Positions 1-44,082 of a stretch of DNA of 64,000 bases are shown piece by piece. The stretch covers positions 1 through 64,000 of IMG/VR virus record IMGVR_UViG_3300020473_001965; one strand, given 5' to 3'. The first letter of the stretch is position 1. Every line of letters starts with the position of its first letter. The position numbers and the translations under genes are program-made. The notes below the pieces were generated by a model that saw only the letters and a list, made by a program, of their open reading frames with translations, had not been told where the DNA came from and searched no databases.

Positions 1-375
1 TCGGGACGACGGTCTCGTTTCCGATTCCGCCAGAGAGACTTCTATCACCGACAGTTAGATTCTGGAGGATCTTAATGAAAACTCCTTCCCAAGACTTTTT
101 CTTGGTAGTTGCCCTTATCCCGTTTCCACGATGAACCTACAAATCCGTGGATACTCTCAGCAGCATTCCCTCAGTGGTATGAGGACTCATGCATCGAATT
201 GCTGGACGATTCTCAGAGGTACCACCCTCCTTAACTCATCCCCTCTCTTAGTTGGGCGGCATAGTGAAAGAACACCACTTTCCCAAACGAGGTTTTCTCT
301 ACCGCGTGGCTTACACCATTGCGCTTAGGGGTCGGTAATACCACCTAAGTTTATAGACCCGAGAACTGGGGTCTT
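1..375 (-). ncRNA. Candidate large structured non-coding RNA, truncated by the left window edge
   Basis: Minus strand is a run of hairpins (GACCC..GGGTC, CTTAGG..CCTAAG, GCGGTAG..TATGCCGC, CCACG..CGTGG, CCAAGA..TCTTGG, GGAG..CTCC) with no credible ORF; preceded by a promoter and a boxA-like CGTTCTTTAACA. Confidence 0.6.
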
Positions 376-382
376 TTTATAA

Positions 383-434
383 TGTTAAAGAACGTAATAG
401 AAAAGATTATACATAGATAATTTTTCTTGTACAC
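383..434 (-). promoter_or_regulatory. Promoter GTGTAC-N17-TATAAT followed by a boxA-like antiterminator (383-394)
   Basis: Same spacing as the repeated phage promoter family; CGTTCTTTAACA resembles rrn boxA. Confidence 0.6.
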
Positions 435-458: not shown

Positions 459-674
459 TTACTTCTTCTGAACAAACGCGTAGAGTTTTTCAGCCTCAAT
501 AATGATATCTTCAGACGTAAACGGATCTATTGGCTTGCGCGCATAGTGCCGATCATTATCTGCAAGAAAGTGCTCATTAGATTCAAGTCGGCTGACTCTC
601 TCACTGACGATACCCATCGCCATTCCCAGCAGTTCTGTTCGGAGCTGGTACCCGCTTTTGTTACTATCACTCAT
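459..674 (-). CDS. Small conserved-type phage hypothetical protein
   Basis: 71 aa ORF with AGGAG RBS; KSGYQLRTELL...EAEKLYAFV pattern. Confidence 0.7.
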   Translation of the reverse strand: MSDSNKSGYQLRTELLGMAMGIVSERVSRLESNEHFLADNDRHYARKPIDPFTSEDIIIEAEKLYAFVQKK

Positions 675-757: not shown

Positions 758-1543
758 TTATATTTTTAAACAAAGACACTGGATCGACCCACCAGATTTT
801 AGAAATTCTCCTACATCAACTGGTCTTGTTTTTATTCCATGGTTATTTTTTAGAACTTTTTCTACTTCTGAGTGTCTAGATGGTATCAATAGCGTCTCAT
901 TAACCAGCATAGAGTTACACATAAACAACCTGGCATCTGCTTCACTTATAGGAATTAAATTAATTACTTCGGACAGTTTTTCTATTTCTCCGGATTTGAA
1001 AGCATCAGGAAAATATATTGCATGAGTATCTGAAACCTTGCAAAAACACGTGTCTAGATGATAATATCTAGGGTCTACTAATTCTAAACTAATAAGTTGC
1101 AACCCTAAGGCGCCCGCAGTGATCTCTAGAGATAAAAGATCAGATCTATAACCATAACCACCAATTAGCGTGTTAGAGTGTATCAGAGAATCACCACAAC
1201 CTTCGAATGATAATCCTGGAACTATATCGACAACAGAGAACCCCTCGTTGATAAACCACTTTCTAAAATGGGTCGATTCTCCCTTTCTTTCATCATGTTT
1301 CATAGAAGAAATGACAAAAGTCTTTCCAGAAACGATGCCAGCATTGGCAGTAAAAACCATATCTGGTAAACCGGACTGCGGAGAAATTGTTTTTACAACA
1401 CCACCAGATTCCTGTATTGCTTTGACAAGACCCAACCACTGATCTTGTGACAATCTGTTGTCTACTGGATCTCCTGTCATCCATGGATTGATAGAATAAT
1501 CAATTTTAAAGTGATCCGGTGGGCATAAAAGAAAAGTATCCAT
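758..1543 (-). CDS. Amidinotransferase / dimethylarginine dimethylaminohydrolase family protein
   Basis: INPWM, LPDMVFTANAG, FEGxGD, YHLDTCF and C-terminal GGSIQC motifs. Confidence 0.88.
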   Translation of the reverse strand: MDTFLLCPPDHFKIDYSINPWMTGDPVDNRLSQDQWLGLVKAIQESGGVVKTISPQSGLPDMVFTANAGIVSGKTFVISSMKHDERKGESTHFRKWFINEGFSVVDIVPGLSFEGCGDSLIHSNTLIGGYGYRSDLLSLEITAGALGLQLISLELVDPRYYHLDTCFCKVSDTHAIYFPDAFKSGEIEKLSEVINLIPISEADARLFMCNSMLVNETLLIPSRHSEVEKVLKNNHGIKTRPVDVGEFLKSGGSIQCLCLKI

Positions 1544-1569: not shown

Positions 1570-2571
1570 TCATTCAATAGATTGAATAAGACCTGCGCTG
1601 ATCCAGTCTTCTAGACCGTCCTGCCAAACTAAGGAGCCGTCCGAAGACAATCCTGTTAGTGACATAATAGCAGCTGTTCCTAGCGTAACTATGACAGGTC
1701 TCAATTCTGAATCTGAAAATGTCTGAGTTGGATTTTCACAACTCATTTCACAAATAGAATTAGTAGGATTTTCAAAATCACAATGGTCTGAATCTACAAT
1801 CTTCACAATTTGATAATCGGTCATCATTCTAAACAGGTCTAATCCATTATTTTCACCATTGCATGTTGACGGTTCACCCATGATAAAAAACGCCGGAGAA
1901 GATACGTGGTCTGCATAAGCCCGGCCAATAAAATCATCTACACCAGGAACGTCCTCTGTGTCTGTTGTATCTAATCCTAAAACACCGATAGCATTGCTGT
2001 CTTCGGCCGCGGCAATAATTGCCGCCAGTCCACCCGCAGAATGCCCAGCATATACTACGTTTTCACTGCCATGTATCATAGCTAGCTCAATCATATTCTG
2101 GCCGTTCATTTCGTGATCAACACCAAAAAATACGTTGTAATGACATAATGTAGGAAGTAAAACTTCAACACCCCATGATGCTAGGTGTTCTGCCCAGCCT
2201 GTCATAACTCCAGAGCCCCGGGCGAAACCATGTCCTAGAACAACAACCGGTGGATCATCAACATCAGGTGTATGTATTTCATATTCCATGCTAGAACAGT
2301 TTGTTACAGTAGCTGTTCTTATTTCTTTTGTTGAATAATAACCGCCAGATTGAGAAAAATCGGTAACAGGCTGATCAGTATCTTCAGTAGATTCAGGGCT
2401 GGCCGAATCTTCACTTTCAACAACAGTTTCTTCTTCTTCGGGAATAGAAGTTTCTTCATTTTCTTCCGTAGTATCAGAAAATATATCACCTTGTACCTTT
2501 TCTGAATCGTGAGTTATTCCAACTTCGCAAGCTGTTATCACAGCAAGCAGCAATACAATACTGGGTTTCAT
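1570..2571 (-). CDS. Lipoprotein with alpha/beta-hydrolase domain (chlorophyllase/dienelactone-hydrolase-like)
   Basis: Lipobox-like ITAC, acidic linker, HGF, GHSAGG nucleophile elbow, DHCDF His. Confidence 0.8.
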   Translation of the reverse strand: MKPSIVLLLAVITACEVGITHDSEKVQGDIFSDTTEENEETSIPEEEETVVESEDSASPESTEDTDQPVTDFSQSGGYYSTKEIRTATVTNCSSMEYEIHTPDVDDPPVVVLGHGFARGSGVMTGWAEHLASWGVEVLLPTLCHYNVFFGVDHEMNGQNMIELAMIHGSENVVYAGHSAGGLAAIIAAAEDSNAIGVLGLDTTDTEDVPGVDDFIGRAYADHVSSPAFFIMGEPSTCNGENNGLDLFRMMTDYQIVKIVDSDHCDFENPTNSICEMSCENPTQTFSDSELRPVIVTLGTAAIMSLTGLSSDGSLVWQDGLEDWISAGLIQSIE

Positions 2572-2572
2572 T

Positions 2573-3088
2573 TCAAATATCTCCAACTGCTGATAAAACT
2601 ACAGGACAAGGGAAATTAAGCGCCATCTCAATCAATACACATCCTGCGCCCTGACAAGACTTAATAGTTACATCGAAATCCAGATCCATTTCTTCTTCTG
2701 AAACGATCGTACCCCGCATAACACTCTTGATCTTTAGCGTTGCGCTACCTCCCAACGCCGTATCTTCAATGTGCGTTTCATCGCAGACAAAAATACCACC
2801 ATTTCCGATCTCACAACTTGTGTCATCGGTGTTGAACTGTGAAAGACTTCCATCTTTTACTGTGAATTTAGAAGGTACCATTTCGGTAACGTCTTGATAC
2901 GCATTCACACCGCAATTATCGCTAACTGACCTTGGGTTAGAAACAGACCATTGCCCGTCTATGGGCACCAGCTCATTTTCGTATGTAGAAGAGTTAAGAA
3001 GATTTTCATAATCTCCTGTGTCACCCAGCGGATTCTTGGCTGGGGCGCAGGCAAATAGTGTCACTAAAAGAAATAAGGGATTTATCAT
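2573..3088 (-). CDS. Hypothetical lipoprotein
   Basis: Signal peptide ending LFAC, DTG motif, paired Cys. Confidence 0.7.
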   Translation of the reverse strand: MINPLFLLVTLFACAPAKNPLGDTGDYENLLNSSTYENELVPIDGQWSVSNPRSVSDNCGVNAYQDVTEMVPSKFTVKDGSLSQFNTDDTSCEIGNGGIFVCDETHIEDTALGGSATLKIKSVMRGTIVSEEEMDLDFDVTIKSCQGAGCVLIEMALNFPCPVVLSAVGDI

Positions 3089-4011
3089 TATTCTATAACC
3101 TCGCTAGCATCAAGTGCAGCCAAAACACCATCGATCGTCCAGAAAGCAGTGTATATTTCAGCATCAGCGACCCAAGACATGCCGCATTCAATCCACCATC
3201 TATTGTTCCATGACTTAGTACGGATGGTTTGATAAGAAAGTGTAACTGTGGTGTCTTGGCCAAATGAATTGTCTATCCAGTCACCAAAAAAGAAACCATT
3301 TAGAAGATCTTCTGCATCAGTATCGTAATAATAACGGAGGTCTTCGATGAAATCAGGAGTAATCTCTATCATCAGTTCTCCAAGAACAAAATAATCGTCC
3401 TTGTGGTCTTCAGTTGTCTCAATGGCAACCAAAGAGTAGGGAAGGTCTAGCGTAAGATGTGCAACCATCGCGATGACAACCGCTCTGGTACGTGAGGCTT
3501 CTTCGTGGTCTGCCAGATAATAATAGTGGTCCCACGCGTAAGAGGGTTCACCCCCAAGCAGCGCTTGCTCTAAATTCGCCAAATACCTTGATGCAAAGTC
3601 TACGACAATTCTTTTTGCCCAGTCCTGATCTTCGATCTCGCCACGTTCAATCGCTTGAATAATACGATTTGTTATATGACGATAAGTTGTTGGAAACATA
3701 CCCCACGGATCATTACAATACTCGAATAAGCTCGCAATCTCATCGATTTTTTCGTAAATGTCATAGATGTCTTCAGATTCAGTTGTTTTTGTAAGGCCTA
3801 CAATTCTATTGGCAGAAGAAGATGAAATTAGGTCGTTGTTGCACAGAGTATCATCATATAAAAGATCACCACCCGCCTCTTGATAGTTTGTTGGGTCTAC
3901 TTCTATTTCTCTATTTTCGATGTATTCGACACTACCTGAATCTCCTGATTCTGGAACGGCACAACCCACAATAATTGCGCTAAAACATAAATAAACAGCT
4001 CTTTTTAACAT
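3088..4011 (-). CDS. Lipoprotein, DUF5995-like
   Basis: IVGC lipobox; YRHIT, DFASRYL, AHLTLDLP resemble DUF5995. Confidence 0.65.
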   Translation of the reverse strand: MLKRAVYLCFSAIIVGCAVPESGDSGSVEYIENREIEVDPTNYQEAGGDLLYDDTLCNNDLISSSSANRIVGLTKTTESEDIYDIYEKIDEIASLFEYCNDPWGMFPTTYRHITNRIIQAIERGEIEDQDWAKRIVVDFASRYLANLEQALLGGEPSYAWDHYYYLADHEEASRTRAVVIAMVAHLTLDLPYSLVAIETTEDHKDDYFVLGELMIEITPDFIEDLRYYYDTDAEDLLNGFFFGDWIDNSFGQDTTVTLSYQTIRTKSWNNRWWIECGMSWVADAEIYTAFWTIDGVLAALDASEVIE

Positions 4012-5353: not shown

Positions 5354-5720
5354 TGGTGGACCCGGCGGGAGTCGAACCCGCGTCCGCAATAACTTCAAAG
5401 TCGAGTCATTCACAGGTTTGTCTAATTTATTCCCAAATTAGAAAGGTAGCTACAAAATTCCCTTTTCCTATGTAGCCTTGGAAAACCACCTGTTTCCAGG
5501 GTAACCATTCTGATTTTTTATTTTTGCAGGATCTCTACCTGTTATCTTAAGTTGGGTATCAAGGTCTTAAGAAACCCCGTCGAATTAAGCGGCTAAGCGC
5601 TGTTCGTAGTGATAATTGTTGTTGGCAATTAAAGTTTTGAAACCGCGTTTAAGGTCAGCTATTTCGTGCGACCACCTGCACTCTCATTCTCCACTACCCC
5701 GTCGAAGCCGTTTCGGGCCC
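5354..5720 (-). ncRNA. ssrA: tmRNA; tag (A)ANNNYHYEQRLAA at 5585-5626
   Basis: 5' GGGCCCG pairs with 3' CGGGUCC-ACCA with G3.U Ala determinant; T-loop GGUUCGACUCC; tag ORF ends LAA-stop. Confidence 0.95.
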
Positions 5721-6695: not shown

Positions 6696-7183
6696 AATAA
6701 TCTTCTCATTTTTCTATTTATGGCTCTTCTTTCTTTTCTATTTACTCTCTCTAAAAAAGTAATTCCATCTAGGTGGTCTATTTCATGCTGAACACAAATA
6801 GCTTCTAAGTCTTTGAAGACTCTTGATTCTCGTTCTCCGTTGATGCTTAGATAACTAATTTGAACTGTACTGTACCTTTGAACAGCAACTTCCACACCGG
6901 GAAAGCTTAGGCATCCTTCTTTTTCATAAGACTCTCCTCGGCCTTCTCTGATTACTGGATTAATAAAGCATAAGGGCTCTTCTTGATCTTCTGAGCAGTC
7001 CATCACAAAGATCCTATTCAAATATCCTGCCTGATTTGCCGCTAAACCTACTCCCTTTGATTCGTACATCAAGTCTAACATTTTATCAATTTGAGCAATC
7101 ACCTTGTCGTCAATTTTTTCAACTTCTTTGCAAGGCGATGATAAGGACGGATCTGGGTATTTGAGTATTTTTTCACTTTTCAT
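6692..7183 (-). CDS. def: Peptide deformylase
   Basis: GVGLAANQ, EGCLS and HEIDH motifs. Confidence 0.95.
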   Translation of the reverse strand: MKSEKILKYPDPSLSSPCKEVEKIDDKVIAQIDKMLDLMYESKGVGLAANQAGYLNRIFVMDCSEDQEEPLCFINPVIREGRGESYEKEGCLSFPGVEVAVQRYSTVQISYLSINGERESRVFKDLEAICVQHEIDHLDGITFLERVNRKERRAINRKMRRLL

Positions 7184-7665
7184 TTTGAATGTTTGTCCGC
7201 CACAGCCGACGAAGCCCAAGAATCAGGTTTAGTTCTTATAGGGAACCCTGTGCTTTTAGCATAACCGGTGAGTTGTTCAGCGTATTTACCTGTTGCGCCT
7301 TTATCTGGAGAAGTGCTAATGTCTAGGTGTAGTTCTAAATTAGCCTCTGGGCACGTTTCTGATATCATCAAGGTGGTATTTACTGTTTTTGTCACTTCTT
7401 CTAGCATTCTTGTAACAAGCAGCCTAAAAGGGCCCACAGGCACTCTGTCTCTTTTAAGAAAATACCTTCCACCTTGTTGATTTTCTGCACCATGAAGACA
7501 AACCGCAGTTACAAAAACGCATATGTCTTTTGTCATAAAACTATCAGTACCTATAAAAATTCGCCCCTTGTCTTTTGTGTGTGCCCTTAATTCTACTATC
7601 AGGTCATCGATATCGATTGTATTTCCTTTTGGGTCAAACCAAAAATTACTTTTTAACAGGCTCAT
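7180..7665 (-). CDS. YkuK (DUF458) RNase H-like protein
   Basis: IFIGTDS, LHLDI and C-terminal AVADKHSK. Confidence 0.8.
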   Translation of the reverse strand: MSLLKSNFWFDPKGNTIDIDDLIVELRAHTKDKGRIFIGTDSFMTKDICVFVTAVCLHGAENQQGGRYFLKRDRVPVGPFRLLVTRMLEEVTKTVNTTLMISETCPEANLELHLDISTSPDKGATGKYAEQLTGYAKSTGFPIRTKPDSWASSAVADKHSK

Positions 7666-9022
7666 TTATTAAAGCTCCAGATGTATTTTTAATTAGAAGT
7701 GCACTGTTATGACAAACTCTCATACAATTAATAAAGCTACCAGCCGGAATCTTTTTTACTCTATTGAAAAACTTTTCTAATCCCTCTATTATAATAGGGT
7801 TTTCTTTTTTATCGTGTGCAGCAGCAAAGTCTTTTATTGAAAACATTCCAAAATCTCTAGCTATAGGGATTGTTCTAAAAGCAGCATCAATATTGATTTT
7901 AGTCTTTCTAATTTCACTATCAGACGTGTTTTTTGAAGGTGTAAAATGAATGCTTCTCCCACTCAGAGCCTTCATCCTGTATTGCATTGTCCTGTCAAAC
8001 AACTCTAAAGAGAAAGGGTCTAAGTTTTTTCTTTTTGCTTCAGCGTTCTTTTTAACTCTGTTTAAATGGTGGTGAATCTGTGCTGTTTTTGTATTGTTGA
8101 TAAAGATAATCTTACTAGGCTTTATTTCAACTCGATCAACCAGTTTAATTTCACTATAATCAATAGATGATATGAGATTCCCTTTCAAGTATGATACCGG
8201 GTCAGTGTCACAAACAACAGACATGTCAACAAAAGAGTTGATCGATTTTTCATCCTTTAATAGTTTTACAGGAAATATATTTAAAGCCTTTCTTTGCATG
8301 TTTACAAACAGTGTCTGTAAAACTTCATCTGCGTAACCTTGTGACACAATAACCATGGGATCTGTATTTTTAGATGCAAATTCTAATATGTGGTGTATCT
8401 CAGCTACGCTTTCAATGACACCATCAATAATTATCACTTTTGCAAAAGAATGATCCCAACTGTTACTCTTAATAAAAAATTCATTAAACGTCTCAACGTC
8501 AAAAGAAAACGCGTTTTTTATTTCAATAGTAGGATTTTCTATCTTTGAATCTTCAACAAAGAATTTACCAGACAAGCCTGTGGATACGAAAGCCTCTTCT
8601 AGTGCATGGCGTGTTATTTCACACCCAGACGCCTGGCTTACAAATTTTATAACTTCTTTTTTTCTCGTAGGAGAAACTATCTTTTCAATCATTTCAAATG
8701 ATGGGCATTTAATATCATCATTTGATGACTTAAGTAAGTTAATTGTGTACCATAATCCAAAATCAGAAAAAAAGGGTGCTTTATAAAAAAGCTCCAGGCT
8801 TTGTTGCGTCACAAAATCTATAATGGGTCGTGAAAGATTTTTCTCATATGTGAGACATTGAAACTTGTCTGATATGTTTGAAAGATAAAATATTTTATCG
8901 TCCGCATTCGAAAACAATGCGTTCCCTGTTTGAAATTGATTCAGCCTGGACCAAATTTCATCAATAGACTTTCTATATTCATCTTCATACAAGTCATTAG
9001 ACAGCACGTTTACAAAGCTCAT
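7646..9022 (-). CDS. Highly divergent GroEL/Cpn60-like protein
   Basis: Apical-domain-like IIDGVIESVAEIHHILE..PMVIVSQG..EVLQTLFVN..DMSVV; no GDGTT motif. Confidence 0.65.
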   Translation of the reverse strand: MSFVNVLSNDLYEDEYRKSIDEIWSRLNQFQTGNALFSNADDKIFYLSNISDKFQCLTYEKNLSRPIIDFVTQQSLELFYKAPFFSDFGLWYTINLLKSSNDDIKCPSFEMIEKIVSPTRKKEVIKFVSQASGCEITRHALEEAFVSTGLSGKFFVEDSKIENPTIEIKNAFSFDVETFNEFFIKSNSWDHSFAKVIIIDGVIESVAEIHHILEFASKNTDPMVIVSQGYADEVLQTLFVNMQRKALNIFPVKLLKDEKSINSFVDMSVVCDTDPVSYLKGNLISSIDYSEIKLVDRVEIKPSKIIFINNTKTAQIHHHLNRVKKNAEAKRKNLDPFSLELFDRTMQYRMKALSGRSIHFTPSKNTSDSEIRKTKINIDAAFRTIPIARDFGMFSIKDFAAAHDKKENPIIIEGLEKFFNRVKKIPAGSFINCMRVCHNSALLIKNTSGALINEPVKK

Positions 9023-17895: not shown

Positions 17896-17971
17896 TGGAG
17901 CCACTGATAGGGTTCGAACCTACGACCTGCTGATTACAAATCAGCTGCTCTACCAACTGAGCTACAGTGGC
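17896..17971 (-). tRNA. tRNA-Thr(UGU)
   Basis: Complete cloverleaf, anticodon loop TTTGTAA, encoded CCA. Confidence 0.95.
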
Positions 17972-35834: not shown

Positions 35835-35921
35835 TGGTAGGACAGGCGGGACTCGAACCCGCATGCTCATTCGAGCGAGAGATTTTAAGTCTCTTGTGTC
35901 TACCGATTCCACCACTGTCCC
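35835..35921 (-). tRNA. tRNA-Leu(UAA)
   Basis: Cloverleaf with long variable arm, loop CTTAAAA, CCA. Confidence 0.95.
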
Positions 35922-35927
35922 GAGTTT

Positions 35928-36005
35928 TGGTAGGCTCACCGGGACTCGAACCCGGAACCCGCAGTTTATGAGACTGCTGCTCTAACCTGATTGAGCTATG
36001 AGCCT
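35928..36005 (-). tRNA. tRNA with CAU anticodon, probably Ile2 (alternatively elongator Met)
   Basis: Cloverleaf, loop CTCATAA, AGGCTCA acceptor resembles Ile tRNAs, CCA. Confidence 0.9.
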
Positions 36006-36014
36006 GTAAGATGT

Positions 36015-36130
36015 GAGACACCTGTTTGTTAGTCGATAATAGTTGTATGCGCGTTAATAACCGACTGCTAGGCTGTGCCTCCCTGCGCCCGGGCGAGCGT
36101 TTGTGTCCCTGACCTAATGTCTCCGCCGCC
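36015..36130 (-). ncRNA. Candidate small structured RNA between tRNA-Lys and tRNA(CAU)
   Basis: GAGACA..TGTCTC closing stem, AGTCGGT..ATCGACT; upstream promoter-like ATGAAC..TACGAT. Confidence 0.4.
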
Positions 36131-36177
36131 ACTCTTTATCGTACCGCGCTCCCCGTCAATGTTCATGCCAAAAGTAA

Positions 36178-36253
36178 TGGTGGGCCGTCCGAGACTCGAA
36201 CTCGGAACCTGCGGATTAAAAGTCCGATGCTCTGCCGGTTGAGCTAACGGCCC
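36178..36253 (-). tRNA. tRNA-Lys(UUU)
   Basis: Cloverleaf, loop CTTTTAA, CCA. Confidence 0.95.
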
Positions 36254-36257
36254 GTAC

Positions 36258-36692
36258 GATAGAGTTCCCAGCTTCTCTATCTAGACACAGCCTGTAAAGT
36301 CAGTACTTCGACTACGCTTACGCAACCACGAGATAGCTTACTGCTCGTAAGTCTTACCCACTATCTCTCTGGCCTGTGTCCCCCACTATAAGAAAGAGCT
36401 TTGGTGAGTTGGCACGTATCCCAGTACCCGTTCGCTCACCCTTGTGTTTCGGAAGTGCTCTACCCTCCCGATCTTCGCCGCCCCTCCCTTGTGCACAGGG
36501 AATGGCATTGAAAATGTAAAGTGAAGAGGAGGTAGGAATCCGTTTAGTTCGGCCGAGACATGCGGTTGGTGCATCATGCCTCTCGGTGCCGCGGACCTCT
36601 TGTGACCACCAATACGTCACTCACCGTCAGCTTCTTTGTTCGACGACTGCCGATTCCTACCAGTTCCTCGGACCGCTAAATCCAAGGCCTCT
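36258..36692 (-). ncRNA. Candidate structured ncRNA(s) in the tRNA operon leader
   Basis: Long-range GGTAGGAATC/GATTCCTACC, CCGAGA/TCTCGG, GGTGAG/CTCACC, GACACAG/CTGTGTC and GAGATAG/CTATCTC helices; no credible ORF. Confidence 0.6.
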
Positions 36693-36696
36693 AAAT

Positions 36697-36731
36697 TGTC
36701 AAAGAGCGGAGAGGACCTAATCTTTCGATTC
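36697..36731 (-). promoter_or_regulatory. boxB-like GAAA hairpin plus boxA (CGCTCTTTGACA) antitermination site
   Basis: Resembles rrn leader arrangement; lies between promoter and RNA genes. Confidence 0.6.
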
Positions 36732-36767
36732 CAGACGGCTGAACCATCAGCGCGAGCAGTGTCCTTT

Positions 36768-36808
36768 CCTTACTTTCTTATTCTACCACGTTTGGGGGGT
36801 TTTTACAT
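36768..36808 (-). promoter_or_regulatory. Repeated early promoter
   Basis: ATGTAA-N17-TAGAAT, 41-bp family. Confidence 0.8.
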
Positions 36809-36813
36809 CAAAA

Positions 36814-36890
36814 TGGCACGCCCGATAGGATTCGAACCTATGACCCTCGGCTTAGAAGGCCGATGCTCTATCCAGCTGAGCTACGGGCGC
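36814..36890 (-). tRNA. tRNA-Arg(UCU)
   Basis: Cloverleaf, loop TTTCTAA-type with anticodon TCT, CCA. Confidence 0.95.
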
Positions 36891-41365: not shown

Positions 41366-41562
41366 CTGTCTAGTCGAGTAGAGTGCTCGAGCTTAGTTTC
41401 CTCTTCCTCTTCAACCTCAACCGGTGTTGGCTCCAGGTATGGGTCTAGACTATCGCCCCTGATCCACATCCCAAACTGAGCACCCCACGTCGGATGAAGG
41501 CTGATAGCAATGAGGAAGCCCCAGACTCCGAATCCGATGATAGTGAATAGCGCTTCAACCAT
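41356..41562 (-). CDS. Small membrane protein
   Basis: N-terminal TM; TAATG coupling. Confidence 0.6.
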   Translation of the reverse strand: MVEALFTIIGFGVWGFLIAISLHPTWGAQFGMWIRGDSLDPYLEPTPVEVEEEEETKLEHSTRLDRWV

Positions 41563-42905
41563 TACGCCGCCTCCTTGCTTGCATTGCCCTTCAGCTCCAC
41601 GACTGTGTCACCGCGGTGTGCGTCGAAGTACAGCTTGCGTCCCGGGACGATCACCCATGCCCGACGCATGCGGGAGGGACCAGGGTCGGCAGCCTCCCCG
41701 TCGGTGCAGACGATGTAGCCATCGAAGCGGTGACGGTTCTCTTCAGCGTGCCGAGCAACTGCCCTGAAGCACGTGCCGCCGCAGCGGAAGCGGTTGAGCT
41801 TCGAGCGCGAGCCCTTCTTCCAGACGATCTCATTGTCGGTGTCAACCGTGCTGTCGAATGGGTAGAAGGTGAACGTTACCTTGCGTGCCAGCTGCTCCAG
41901 CTCTGCGTAGAGCAGTGCCAGCGACTCATCATCAACCGAGCCACTCTGATCGACGTAGACTGCCACGTTGGCGCTGTGACCAATCTTGCGGCCGCTGTGG
42001 ATGTAGGGGTACTTGCGGTTGAGACGCTTCATGGTGCGGCTCTTGTTAGCGCGCTGACTCATGCCAACGAAGTTACGAAGGACTGCGCGCCAGTCAACCT
42101 CATTCGAGCACATCCGACGGAGCTCGCTCCGCATCTCAGCGGGCACCGAGCCCCACTGGCCCTTGCTGTCACACTTCTTGACTGCGTTCTTGAGGGCTTG
42201 CTTGACCTTGCCCTTGACGAGCTCCTTCTCAGCGTCGGTAGCACCCTCGCCCCACTCACCGTGGTCGTCCATGGTACCGGGAACGCCGTCTCCCTCTCCG
42301 GGCTGGCCGCCTTGGCCGTCGCCACCAGTGAGATCGTCCTTCATCTGCTCGTCATCCATCAGCTGGCCGAAGTACCACTCCGCGCTCATGTTCGGCGGGA
42401 AGCTTTCAATCTTTGCCGAGATGCGATCGAAGCGTGCCTTGGCCTGCTCATCGAGCTTGGCGTACGCATCCGGATCGATGTGGATGGCCTGGCCAGGAAT
42501 GAGACCACCCTTGGGAAGCTCCTCCACTGGGATGATCGAGTTGATCGCGAGGTCGGTCGCGTAGTTGTGAACGATGTGCGGGGTCTTCTTGCGGCTAGTC
42601 GTGTGCTCGAAGACCAGGTGGTACACCTCGTGCTTGAGAAGTCCCTTTACTTCTTTGTTGCTCAGCGAGGCGAGGAAGCGGCGGTTCCACCACATCTTGA
42701 TATCACCGTCCTTGGCGAGCACGCCGGCGGTCGGGATCGAGTCCGTCTCCACCTTGGTGACGTCACGAAGCATGGCCGAGAAAAAGGGCTCATCCCACAT
42801 CAACGCTGTGAGGTGGTTGCCAAGGTCGAAAGCAGCGAGCTCCGCGTCGGTCAGCTCTGCGCCTGGTGCCACTGGGATGTCGGTCGAGGTAGTGTTGTCA
42901 GCCAT
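41562..42905 (-). CDS. DUF2201-type metallopeptidase-VWA protein
   Basis: HEVYH, NYATDLAIN, DQSGS MIDAS, GGT, TDG. Confidence 0.88.
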   Translation of the reverse strand: MADNTTSTDIPVAPGAELTDAELAAFDLGNHLTALMWDEPFFSAMLRDVTKVETDSIPTAGVLAKDGDIKMWWNRRFLASLSNKEVKGLLKHEVYHLVFEHTTSRKKTPHIVHNYATDLAINSIIPVEELPKGGLIPGQAIHIDPDAYAKLDEQAKARFDRISAKIESFPPNMSAEWYFGQLMDDEQMKDDLTGGDGQGGQPGEGDGVPGTMDDHGEWGEGATDAEKELVKGKVKQALKNAVKKCDSKGQWGSVPAEMRSELRRMCSNEVDWRAVLRNFVGMSQRANKSRTMKRLNRKYPYIHSGRKIGHSANVAVYVDQSGSVDDESLALLYAELEQLARKVTFTFYPFDSTVDTDNEIVWKKGSRSKLNRFRCGGTCFRAVARHAEENRHRFDGYIVCTDGEAADPGPSRMRRAWVIVPGRKLYFDAHRGDTVVELKGNASKEAA

Positions 42906-42914
42906 TTGTTATCT

Positions 42915-42955
42915 CCTTACTATCTAATAATATCACGCTGCGCCGAATCTTACAC
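42915..42955 (-). promoter_or_regulatory. Repeated early promoter
   Basis: 41-bp family copy. Confidence 0.85.
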
Positions 42956-43016
42956 CAAAGCGCGCCAGCTCCACCACAGAGCTGACGCTTTGGCACACCC
43001 TCTAGCGAGGACTGAA

Positions 43017-44045
43017 TCATGAACGGCTAGCCTGAACGGCCTCGACGACCTTCTTACCGATGAGCTTGTGAAGCTTCTGGATGTTCTTCAGGTTGGAAGT
43101 ACCAGACACCTGGTTCCAGAGGTGAACGAGCATCTCGGAGCTAGGAAGAGCGTTGGCGAACGCGGCCACGTTGGCAGCCTGGCTGGCCTTCCACTCGTTG
43201 TCCTTGCAGTGAGCTGCGAGCTTGCCGATCAGGCCGTTGACCTTGGAGGCCTCGAAGCCCTTGATCTGCTCCGCCACTGCCTCGAAGTTGTCGAGCACGT
43301 CCTCAGCGGACACCTCGTTCTCCCAGTTCTTGGCGAACTCCACCAGCGAGATGGCAGCTTCAACACCGACCATACCCAGAGCGACCGGGTACCACACGTC
43401 GGAAGGCTGCTCCACCTCACCCATGTGCTTGAGGCTCAAGTCAAGGCGTTCCCACGAAGCGGGGTTCGGGGCGACCTTGCCAGGCTCCGTCGCTGCGGTA
43501 GGACGAAGGTGCTCCTCGTGCTGACGAATGAAGTCGACGATGACAGGGGCCAGACGACCCTCAGCCCAGTCGAGGAAGTCAGCGTGAGTCGGCTCCAACT
43601 CAATGCTCCAGAAACGACGGAGAAGAGCAGGGTCCATCTCGTTGACCTCGTACTCGGCACCAACGTTGACCGCCGCGAAGACGCGGGTGTCAGGGTGCAG
43701 CTTGTGACCGTTGAGCTCCCGGTCCAGGACGATCTGGAACGCAGCCTGAATGACCTCGGGGGTCGCACGGTTGAGCTCGTCCATGAAGAGGACGACTGGC
43801 TCACGGCAAGCTTGAGCGTACCAGTCTGGCGGGCAGAAGCGAGTGGTACCATCGACCAGCTCGGGGAGACCAACCATGTCACCTTCGCTCATTTGCGACA
43901 GGCGGCGGTCGATCACCGGCAGCTCCAACCCGGCTGCGATATCCTTGACGAGGTACGACTTACCGATACCGGTAGGACCTTGAATGAGGACCGCAATCTC
44001 TGCGGGGAGGCGAGGGGCGATGTTGTTGAAAGTCTTGATGTCCAT
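43017..44045 (-). CDS. MoxR-type AAA+ ATPase
   Basis: GPTGIGKS, LFMDELNRA, MDPALLRRF, PNPASWE. Confidence 0.9.
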   Translation of the reverse strand: MDIKTFNNIAPRLPAEIAVLIQGPTGIGKSYLVKDIAAGLELPVIDRRLSQMSEGDMVGLPELVDGTTRFCPPDWYAQACREPVVLFMDELNRATPEVIQAAFQIVLDRELNGHKLHPDTRVFAAVNVGAEYEVNEMDPALLRRFWSIELEPTHADFLDWAEGRLAPVIVDFIRQHEEHLRPTAATEPGKVAPNPASWERLDLSLKHMGEVEQPSDVWYPVALGMVGVEAAISLVEFAKNWENEVSAEDVLDNFEAVAEQIKGFEASKVNGLIGKLAAHCKDNEWKASQAANVAAFANALPSSEMLVHLWNQVSGTSNLKNIQKLHKLIGKKVVEAVQASRS

Positions 44046-44082
44046 GCTAGTTTCCTTGGTTAGAGGGGGTGTGTTTTTGTTT

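Follow-up and report, generated by a model that had tools for sequence, protein, structure and literature searches.

A large non-coding RNA of uncultured marine jumbo phages, cut short at a contig end, with a predicted, covariation-supported fold and no match among catalogued RNA families

Large, elaborately folded RNAs of bacteria and phages without a known function are very few, namely GOLLD, ROOL, OLE, raiA and HEARO. Two of them, GOLLD (Rfam RF02032) and ROOL (RF03087), are phage RNAs found near tRNA genes, very abundant, without a known protein partner, and were recently shown to form RNA-only nanocages whose purpose is still unknown (PMC12286853). GOLLD is found in phages and prophages, and a marine example lies downstream of tRNA-Met. 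It is a large multi-domain fold, often above 800 nt in length, with a conserved 3' half and a variable 5' half, and its expression rises during lysis. ROOL is of 574 model positions, with the 659-nt env-120 as an example, is highly ornate with pseudoknots, and is known from rumen or Lactobacillales phages. In both RNAs, the pseudoknots predicted by covariation turned out in part to be contacts between molecules. A further system of relevance is the antitermination leader of rRNA operons, where boxA and the NusB/NusE/NusA/NusG/SuhB complex protect untranslated RNA from Rho and aid its folding (PMC10250234; PMC8632103), and the related nut sites of lambda, where a boxB hairpin follows boxA. Here we describe an RNA which resembles GOLLD and ROOL in its setting but not in sequence.

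The analysed window comprises bases 1-64000 of a 235,672-bp linear virus record (IMGVR_UViG_3300020473_001965), estimated as 87% complete. The element occupies positions 1-395 on the minus strand, and thus abuts the physical end of the contig. An earlier note had proposed, from the letters alone, a non-coding minus-strand RNA behind a promoter and a boxA site, interpreted as the 5' part of a long ornate RNA in which no RNase P core was seen and which could not be assigned to a class. These elements were present, and the interpretation was supported by our analyses. Two details needed correction. Firstly, the note had described about ten consecutive hairpins, while the fold obtained here is a nested multi-domain structure, of which the window contains 17 complete helices and the 5' strands of five long-range helices with partners beyond the contig end. 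Secondly, the RNA ends at base 1 only because the window begins at base 1 of its contig. The -35 hexamer given in the note (GTGTAC-N17) is the same promoter site read one base further upstream. The features, all on the minus strand, are as follows.

406..433 (-): sigma-70-like promoter TGTACA-N16-TATAAT, matching 10 of 12 positions; the predicted start lies about 6-8 nt downstream, just before boxA.
383..394 (-): rrn-type boxA-like element CGUUCUUUAACA at the very 5' end of the transcript, read as CGTTCTTTAACA at 394..383.
355..374 (-): leader hairpin H1 (AGACCC/GGGUCU) with an 8-nt loop carrying an almost invariant GUUCUC, 8-16 nt after boxA.
1..395 (-): the 5' 60% of the roughly 660-nt RNA, family profile positions 2-389 of 656, truncated by the contig end.
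303..349 (-): arms H3 (324-349) and H4/H5 (303-323), the latter with a GAAA-type tetraloop in most members.
242..302 (-): invariant single strand UAGAGAAAAC (about 293-302), followed by the stacked arm H6-H7-H8.
153..241 (-): arms H9/H10 (204-241) and H11-H13 (153-199); the H10 loop GUGGUA (220-225) is complementary to the H13 loop UACCAC (174-179), forming a kissing-loop contact.
146-149 (-): 5' strand of the long-range helix H14.
56..139 (-): multi-branch sub-domain H15-H18, including the invariant GGAAAC tetraloop hairpin H16.
3..55 (-): 5' strands of the long-range helices H19 (49-55), H20 (43-46) and H22 (3-5), the invariant single strand GAAGUCUCUC (33-42), and the complete hairpin H21 (7-32, GAAA loop).

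The partners of H14, H19, H20 and H22 lie beyond the contig end, and the partner strands are seen at 494-508 of a metagenome contig, L018, described below. The region has 47% G+C against 36-40% in the flanks. The longest ORFs touching 1-434 are 37-65 aa, and none is conserved in relatives. The minus strand folded better than shuffled sequence (z -2.48, with 0 of 100 shuffles as good), while the plus strand did not (z -0.43). At gathering thresholds Rfam 15 recognised a tmRNA and five tRNAs elsewhere in the window, and nothing at this locus. A search with all 4227 families at E <= 10 on positions 1-800 and on the full-length L018 copy gave only noise (JA02, sR11, a microRNA and a T-box at 11.9 bits). 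Nine family loci yielded only neighbouring tRNAs at gathering thresholds, and the other end of the contig showed no RNA family and no continuation.

Contigs from two marine metatranscriptomes and two DNA runs were compared with positions 1-1500. The RNA libraries contained 48-339 with 0-1 mismatches, at summed word depths of 16-294, and nothing of 351-1500. Many further contigs, 85-99% identical, piled up on 1-300 in both RNA and DNA runs. In addition, at least 14 RNA runs from at least 6 studies contained 28-57% of the full-length words. We conclude that the element is expressed far above the neighbouring genes. RNA libraries can contain DNA, and the silent flank argues against that here but does not exclude it. 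Since these contigs are short, carry no direction and break at variant sites, the strand and termini of the transcript were assigned from structure, G-U asymmetry, promoter, terminator and tRNA orientation. The pile-up also shows that the element belongs to a family with many close relatives in the same waters, which explains why the assembly stopped inside it.

Family members were collected by pattern scans followed by a profile search. A 24-nt pattern from the least variable stretch found 22 marine metagenome contigs, a split pattern from the 3' part found 15 IMG/VR contigs, and a third pattern added four more IMG/VR contigs. An early 26-nt pattern had found nothing in IMG/VR, and the 24-nt pattern nothing among the cellular genome contigs, where a later scan gave three MAG contigs. 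A profile built from the conserved block matched the members with nhmmer at E = 1e-69 to 1e-225 (6e-124 for the window copy), giving in total about 44 copies, 37 full-length and 7 truncated. Nine contigs, the window's among them, end inside the element. L018 is 100% identical to window 1-395 and continues for another roughly 270 nt to a terminal hairpin and a U-run, and the loose end of an independent DNA run beyond window base 4 reads the same continuation. The complete RNA of this phage is therefore about 660 nt, within a family of about 650-690 nt.

Twenty-five distinct full-length copies (67-100% pairwise identity, mean 77%) were aligned. RNAalifold predicted 159 pairs, 87 of them with compensatory double changes. 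With the leader hairpin added, the model comprised 165 pairs in 35 helices, with 98.3% of cells paired against 37-42% when partners were slid by 1-3 columns, 90 pairs with double changes against 18-27, and a covariation score of 0.388 against 0.07-0.10. None of 500 shuffles reached any of the five measures. Paired cells included 488 G-U but only 16 A-C, which fixes the strand. The helices form a leader hairpin, a 5' domain of stem-loop arms, a central domain closed by long-range helices, and a 3' domain followed by a terminal hairpin. The stem of H1 covaries (GGCCC/GGGCC, CACCC/GGGUG), all 8 pairs of H3 and all 6 pairs of H4/H5 show compensatory changes, and nine of the 14 pairs in H6-H8 covary. 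Four hairpins carry conserved GAAA tetraloops, and several single-stranded stretches of 10-13 nt are invariant. The terminal hairpin was present in all 25 members with different stem sequences, followed by 3-9 U.

A scan of unpaired columns gave two further covarying contacts. The kissing loop between H10 and H13 is 98% paired against 30-61% in slid controls, with U:A to A:U swaps in 5 sequences, and the conserved loop of the terminal hairpin pairs with a segment of the 3' domain, with three covarying pairs. Both could be intramolecular or intermolecular. A predicted pairing of the leader loop (UUCUC) with a distant GAGAA remains a conjecture, since it involves only invariant bases, has no covariation support and has competing partners. 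A resemblance of UAAGGAGG in H10 to a Shine-Dalgarno sequence was rejected, because this stretch covaries as a helix and is not conserved in sequence. An 11-nt tetraloop receptor (UAUGG and CCUAAG in the window's allele) was rejected as well, since the two halves lie in different helices and are not conserved.

The element is non-coding. Variability was flat across codon positions (0.174/0.172/0.160), most gap runs were not multiples of three, and the longest open frame changed strand and frame between members, with 3-11 stops in it.

Proteins encoded in the window hit phage families, and all carrier contigs that could be judged were phage-like. Carriers include complete genomes with terminal repeats of 293 kb and 204 kb and a 94%-complete one of 317 kb, and one copy was found in each of five genomes. 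No GenBank phage gave a blastn match to either the 440-nt or the 665-nt query. Among 185,579 prokaryotic species genomes only three MAG contigs matched, which we regard as mis-binned phage contigs: one is byte-identical to an IMG/VR phage contig, and one is a 305-kb contig encoding a 73%-identical homologue of a window phage protein. A covariance model of the 3' domain found nothing in 150 other genomes of that MAG's class. Relatives found through the neighbouring DDAH/amidinotransferase-like gene did not carry the RNA by BLAST, and the same covariance model found nothing in three jumbo-phage relatives sharing this gene, one of them complete. The RNA is far more conserved than the surrounding proteins, being 79-85% identical between phages whose 643-aa structural-region protein is 74% identical, 36% identical or absent. 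This indicates strong purifying selection, lateral spread, or both.

In most loci tRNA genes lie on the same strand within a few kb. In four loci a tRNA ends 6-8 nt before boxA, and in one a tRNA starts 7 nt after the terminal hairpin. Where no tRNA abuts, a -10-like hexamer (at least 5 of 6) lies 6-23 nt upstream of boxA, in 22 of 36 family copies, and TGTACA recurs as the -35 element in several copies. No protein gene keeps a fixed position. The commonest neighbours are an FKBP-type prolyl isomerase (9 loci), small unknown ORFs, and a PP-loop (TilS-like) protein (4 loci), while the window adds a tmRNA 5 kb upstream and a GroEL-like gene. The setting is a tRNA, translation and proteostasis island.

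The boxA-like element, GUUCUUUAACA in the window and close to the consensus GCUCUUUAACAA, is conserved in all 25 aligned members (consensus G-Y/A-U-C-U-U-U-n-A-M-A), some with an exact GCUCUUUAACA, and it is kept even where a tRNA gene and not a promoter lies directly upstream. As in rRNA operons, it stands near the 5' end of a long, untranslated, highly structured transcript that is probably co-transcribed with tRNAs. The hairpin following it resembles the order in a lambda nut site, not that of E. coli rrn, although its GUUCUC loop is unlike known boxB loops, and no boxC was recognised in the sequence. The transcript is not rRNA. The function of boxA is inferred from sequence only. A GUUCUY-like motif recurs within the RNA (leader loop, H8 loop, H29 strand), so that the "boxA" could instead be a structural strand, and boxA-like words were not significantly enriched in the window (3 found against 1.2 expected).

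Comparison with GOLLD and ROOL showed agreement in setting. The RNA shares with GOLLD its phage location next to tRNA genes, and several copies lie 6-8 nt downstream of tRNA-Met. The GOLLD model, however, gave no match, the only hit at E <= 10 in five carrier genomes being 5-bit noise elsewhere. The RNA is shorter than GOLLD and evenly conserved, with 81-99% column identity along the whole element, and no tRNA is embedded in it. With ROOL it shares setting, size class, abundance and ornateness, features which describe the kind of RNA and do not establish homology. The ROOL model gave no match at E <= 10 in five carrier genomes or on the full-length RNA, although this negative is weak, since the model rang in no control genome. 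The habitat differs, and a conserved boxA leader is present here, of which no report for ROOL is known to us. As to RNase P RNA (RF00010, RF00011), no hit was obtained at E <= 10 on positions 1-800 or on L018. RF00010 was absent from the five carrier genomes at E <= 0.01 while ringing in 11 of 14 controls, and no GGAAAGUC-type core is visible in the alignment. A related phage without this RNA carries a 288-nt RNase P class A RNA inside its tRNA array. This RNase P RNA and the tmRNA match their Rfam models strongly (111.7 and 148.7 bits), whereas the RNA described here matches none and has no counterpart in the cellular genomes searched. We found no description of the family in Rfam 15 or in the literature searched, though one elsewhere cannot be excluded. 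A survey of structured RNAs in IMG/VR reports elements averaging 67 nt and names no such large RNA in the passages searched (PMC10690425).

We are confident that the element is a real and previously uncatalogued large structured phage RNA of which the window contains the 5' part. We infer that it is transcribed by the host RNA polymerase, either from its own sigma-70-like promoter or by read-through from an upstream tRNA, and that boxA recruits host NusB/NusE and the other Nus factors, which would let the transcript escape Rho termination and fold co-transcriptionally. Where the U-run is short, transcription would run on into the next tRNA, and the RNA would be released by tRNA-processing enzymes. 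Our best guess on the function, which is tentative, is a stable, compact RNA particle of the GOLLD/ROOL kind, acting in trans during lytic infection as part of the phage's tRNA and translation-support island. By analogy with GOLLD and ROOL it may be self-associating.

Among the alternatives, a decoy or sponge is doubtful but survives best. On this view the RNA sequesters a host protein (a ribosomal protein, RNase, Hfq-like chaperone or the Nus factors themselves, boxA titrating NusB/NusE) or blunts an anti-phage defence that targets tRNAs or translation. Its abundance relative to the phage mRNAs beside it, its island, and the long invariant single strands, which could bind protein, agree with this. 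However, no partner is known, no conserved neighbouring protein was found, and a decoy rarely needs 35 conserved helices. This idea overlaps with the RNA-particle explanation rather than excluding it. A catalytic role, as a ribozyme processing the phage's own tRNA cluster or as an RNA releasing itself from tRNA co-transcripts, appears unlikely. The spacing of 6-8 nt to same-strand tRNAs implies processing from polycistronic precursors, and large ribozymes likewise combine GNRA tetraloops, long-range helices, pseudoknots and long invariant single strands. Carriers lack RNase P RNA while a non-carrier relative encodes it, but this contrast rests on a single non-carrier genome and is a lead only. 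No known ribozyme model matched, no catalytic motif was recognised, and host RNase P and RNase Z would suffice for processing.

It is very unlikely that the RNA is a highly divergent GOLLD, ROOL, RNase P RNA, group II intron or rRNA fragment missed by the covariance models. The setting, the size close to the 659-nt ROOL env-120, the RNase P RNA of the non-carrier relative and the weakness of the ROOL control leave some room for it, but the negative model searches, the absent RNase P core and the even conservation speak against it, and the ends of the element are a promoter or tRNA and a terminator-like hairpin, not exons. Finally, a protein-coding gene, a cis-regulatory leader or a conserved DNA site is largely refuted, since, although open stretches of up to 115 codons occur in some members and the hairpin at 355-374 looks like a terminator on the plus strand, there is no codon periodicity, downstream genes differ from locus to locus, a terminal hairpin with a U-run closes the element, the compensatory changes with G-U over A-C asymmetry are a signature of RNA, and RNA libraries contain the element without its flanks.

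The element breaks metagenome assemblies and recruits many reads in ocean metatranscriptomes that current annotation leaves unexplained. It offers about 40 natural variants with dense covariation, and it gives an independent case, unrelated to GOLLD and ROOL but with the same genomic habit of phage, tRNA island and very high expression, and features shared by all three would point to the function. It is possible, though less likely than not, that this is a third, independent class of giant ornate phage RNA, native to oceanic jumbo phages and among their most abundant transcripts, made by rRNA-style Nus/boxA antitermination, and assembling into an RNA-only multimer or acting as a new ribozyme on the phage's tRNA and translation machinery. 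On that reading, large self-organising RNAs would be a recurrent phage invention and not two oddities.

The genes upstream of the large RNA in the window, together with the other RNA genes and a second boxA-like word, were as follows.
459-674, minus strand: a 71-aa ORF.
758-1543, minus strand: a DDAH/amidinotransferase-like protein.
1570-2586, minus strand: a weak alpha/beta-hydrolase match.
3088-4011, minus strand: a DUF5995 protein.
5354-5720, minus strand: a phage-encoded tmRNA (111.7 bits) with predicted tag peptide ANNNYHYEQRLAA.
7646-9022, minus strand: a GroEL-like protein.
17896-17971 and 35835-36890, minus strand: five tRNA genes (Thr-TGT, Leu-TAA, Met-CAT, Lys-TTT, Arg-TCT).
36697-36707, minus strand: a second boxA-like word, GCTCTTTGACA.

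The tmRNA lies 5 kb upstream of the large RNA and on the same strand, and another locus of the family, L045, also has a tmRNA 2.3 kb upstream. The 71-aa ORF has homologues next to the RNA in 7 loci, on either side of it, while in other loci an FKBP prolyl isomerase (9 loci) and a PP-loop/TilS-like protein (4 loci) recur near the RNA. The five tRNA genes, all on the minus strand, lie far from this copy of the RNA, whereas most other family members sit inside or beside the tRNA cluster. The second boxA-like word was found between tRNA-Arg and tRNA-Lys. Three matches to the degenerate boxA pattern occur in the window against 1.2 expected, which is not significant. A complete 185-kb relative (record G004) lacks the large RNA. 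It carries an unusually short (288-nt) RNase P class A RNA (148.7 bits) at positions 6783-7070 on the plus strand of its locus L006, directly after two tRNAs in a tRNA array and about 1 kb downstream of the amidinotransferase-like gene.

Two further features were noted on the plus strand or on both strands of the window.
355-374, plus strand: the leader hairpin, which plus TTTTT scores as an intrinsic terminator.
41562-44063: long ORFs overlapping on opposite strands (41562-42905 minus with 41616-43022 plus; 43017-44045 minus with 43068-44063 plus).
Read in this direction, the leader hairpin could also stop antisense transcription entering from the left. Of the overlapping ORFs, the minus-strand 447-aa ORF matches a phage HNH endonuclease family.

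Three MAGs with contigs matching the family, L046 (PBIO01000025.1), L047/L050 (NHDW01000006.1), and L048 (DQKQ01000101.1), are labelled Halobacteriovorax, Methylococcaceae TMED69, and Flavobacteriales. At least two of them contain jumbo-phage contigs carrying this RNA, and the taxonomic labels are therefore not evidence about the host. Finally, nine independent assemblies end inside the RNA, namely the one reported here, at window position 1, and the family contigs L009, L022, L023, L024, L025, L030, L032, and L034. A highly conserved multi-strain element seems to break assembly graphs, which would make it under-represented in contig-based surveys.
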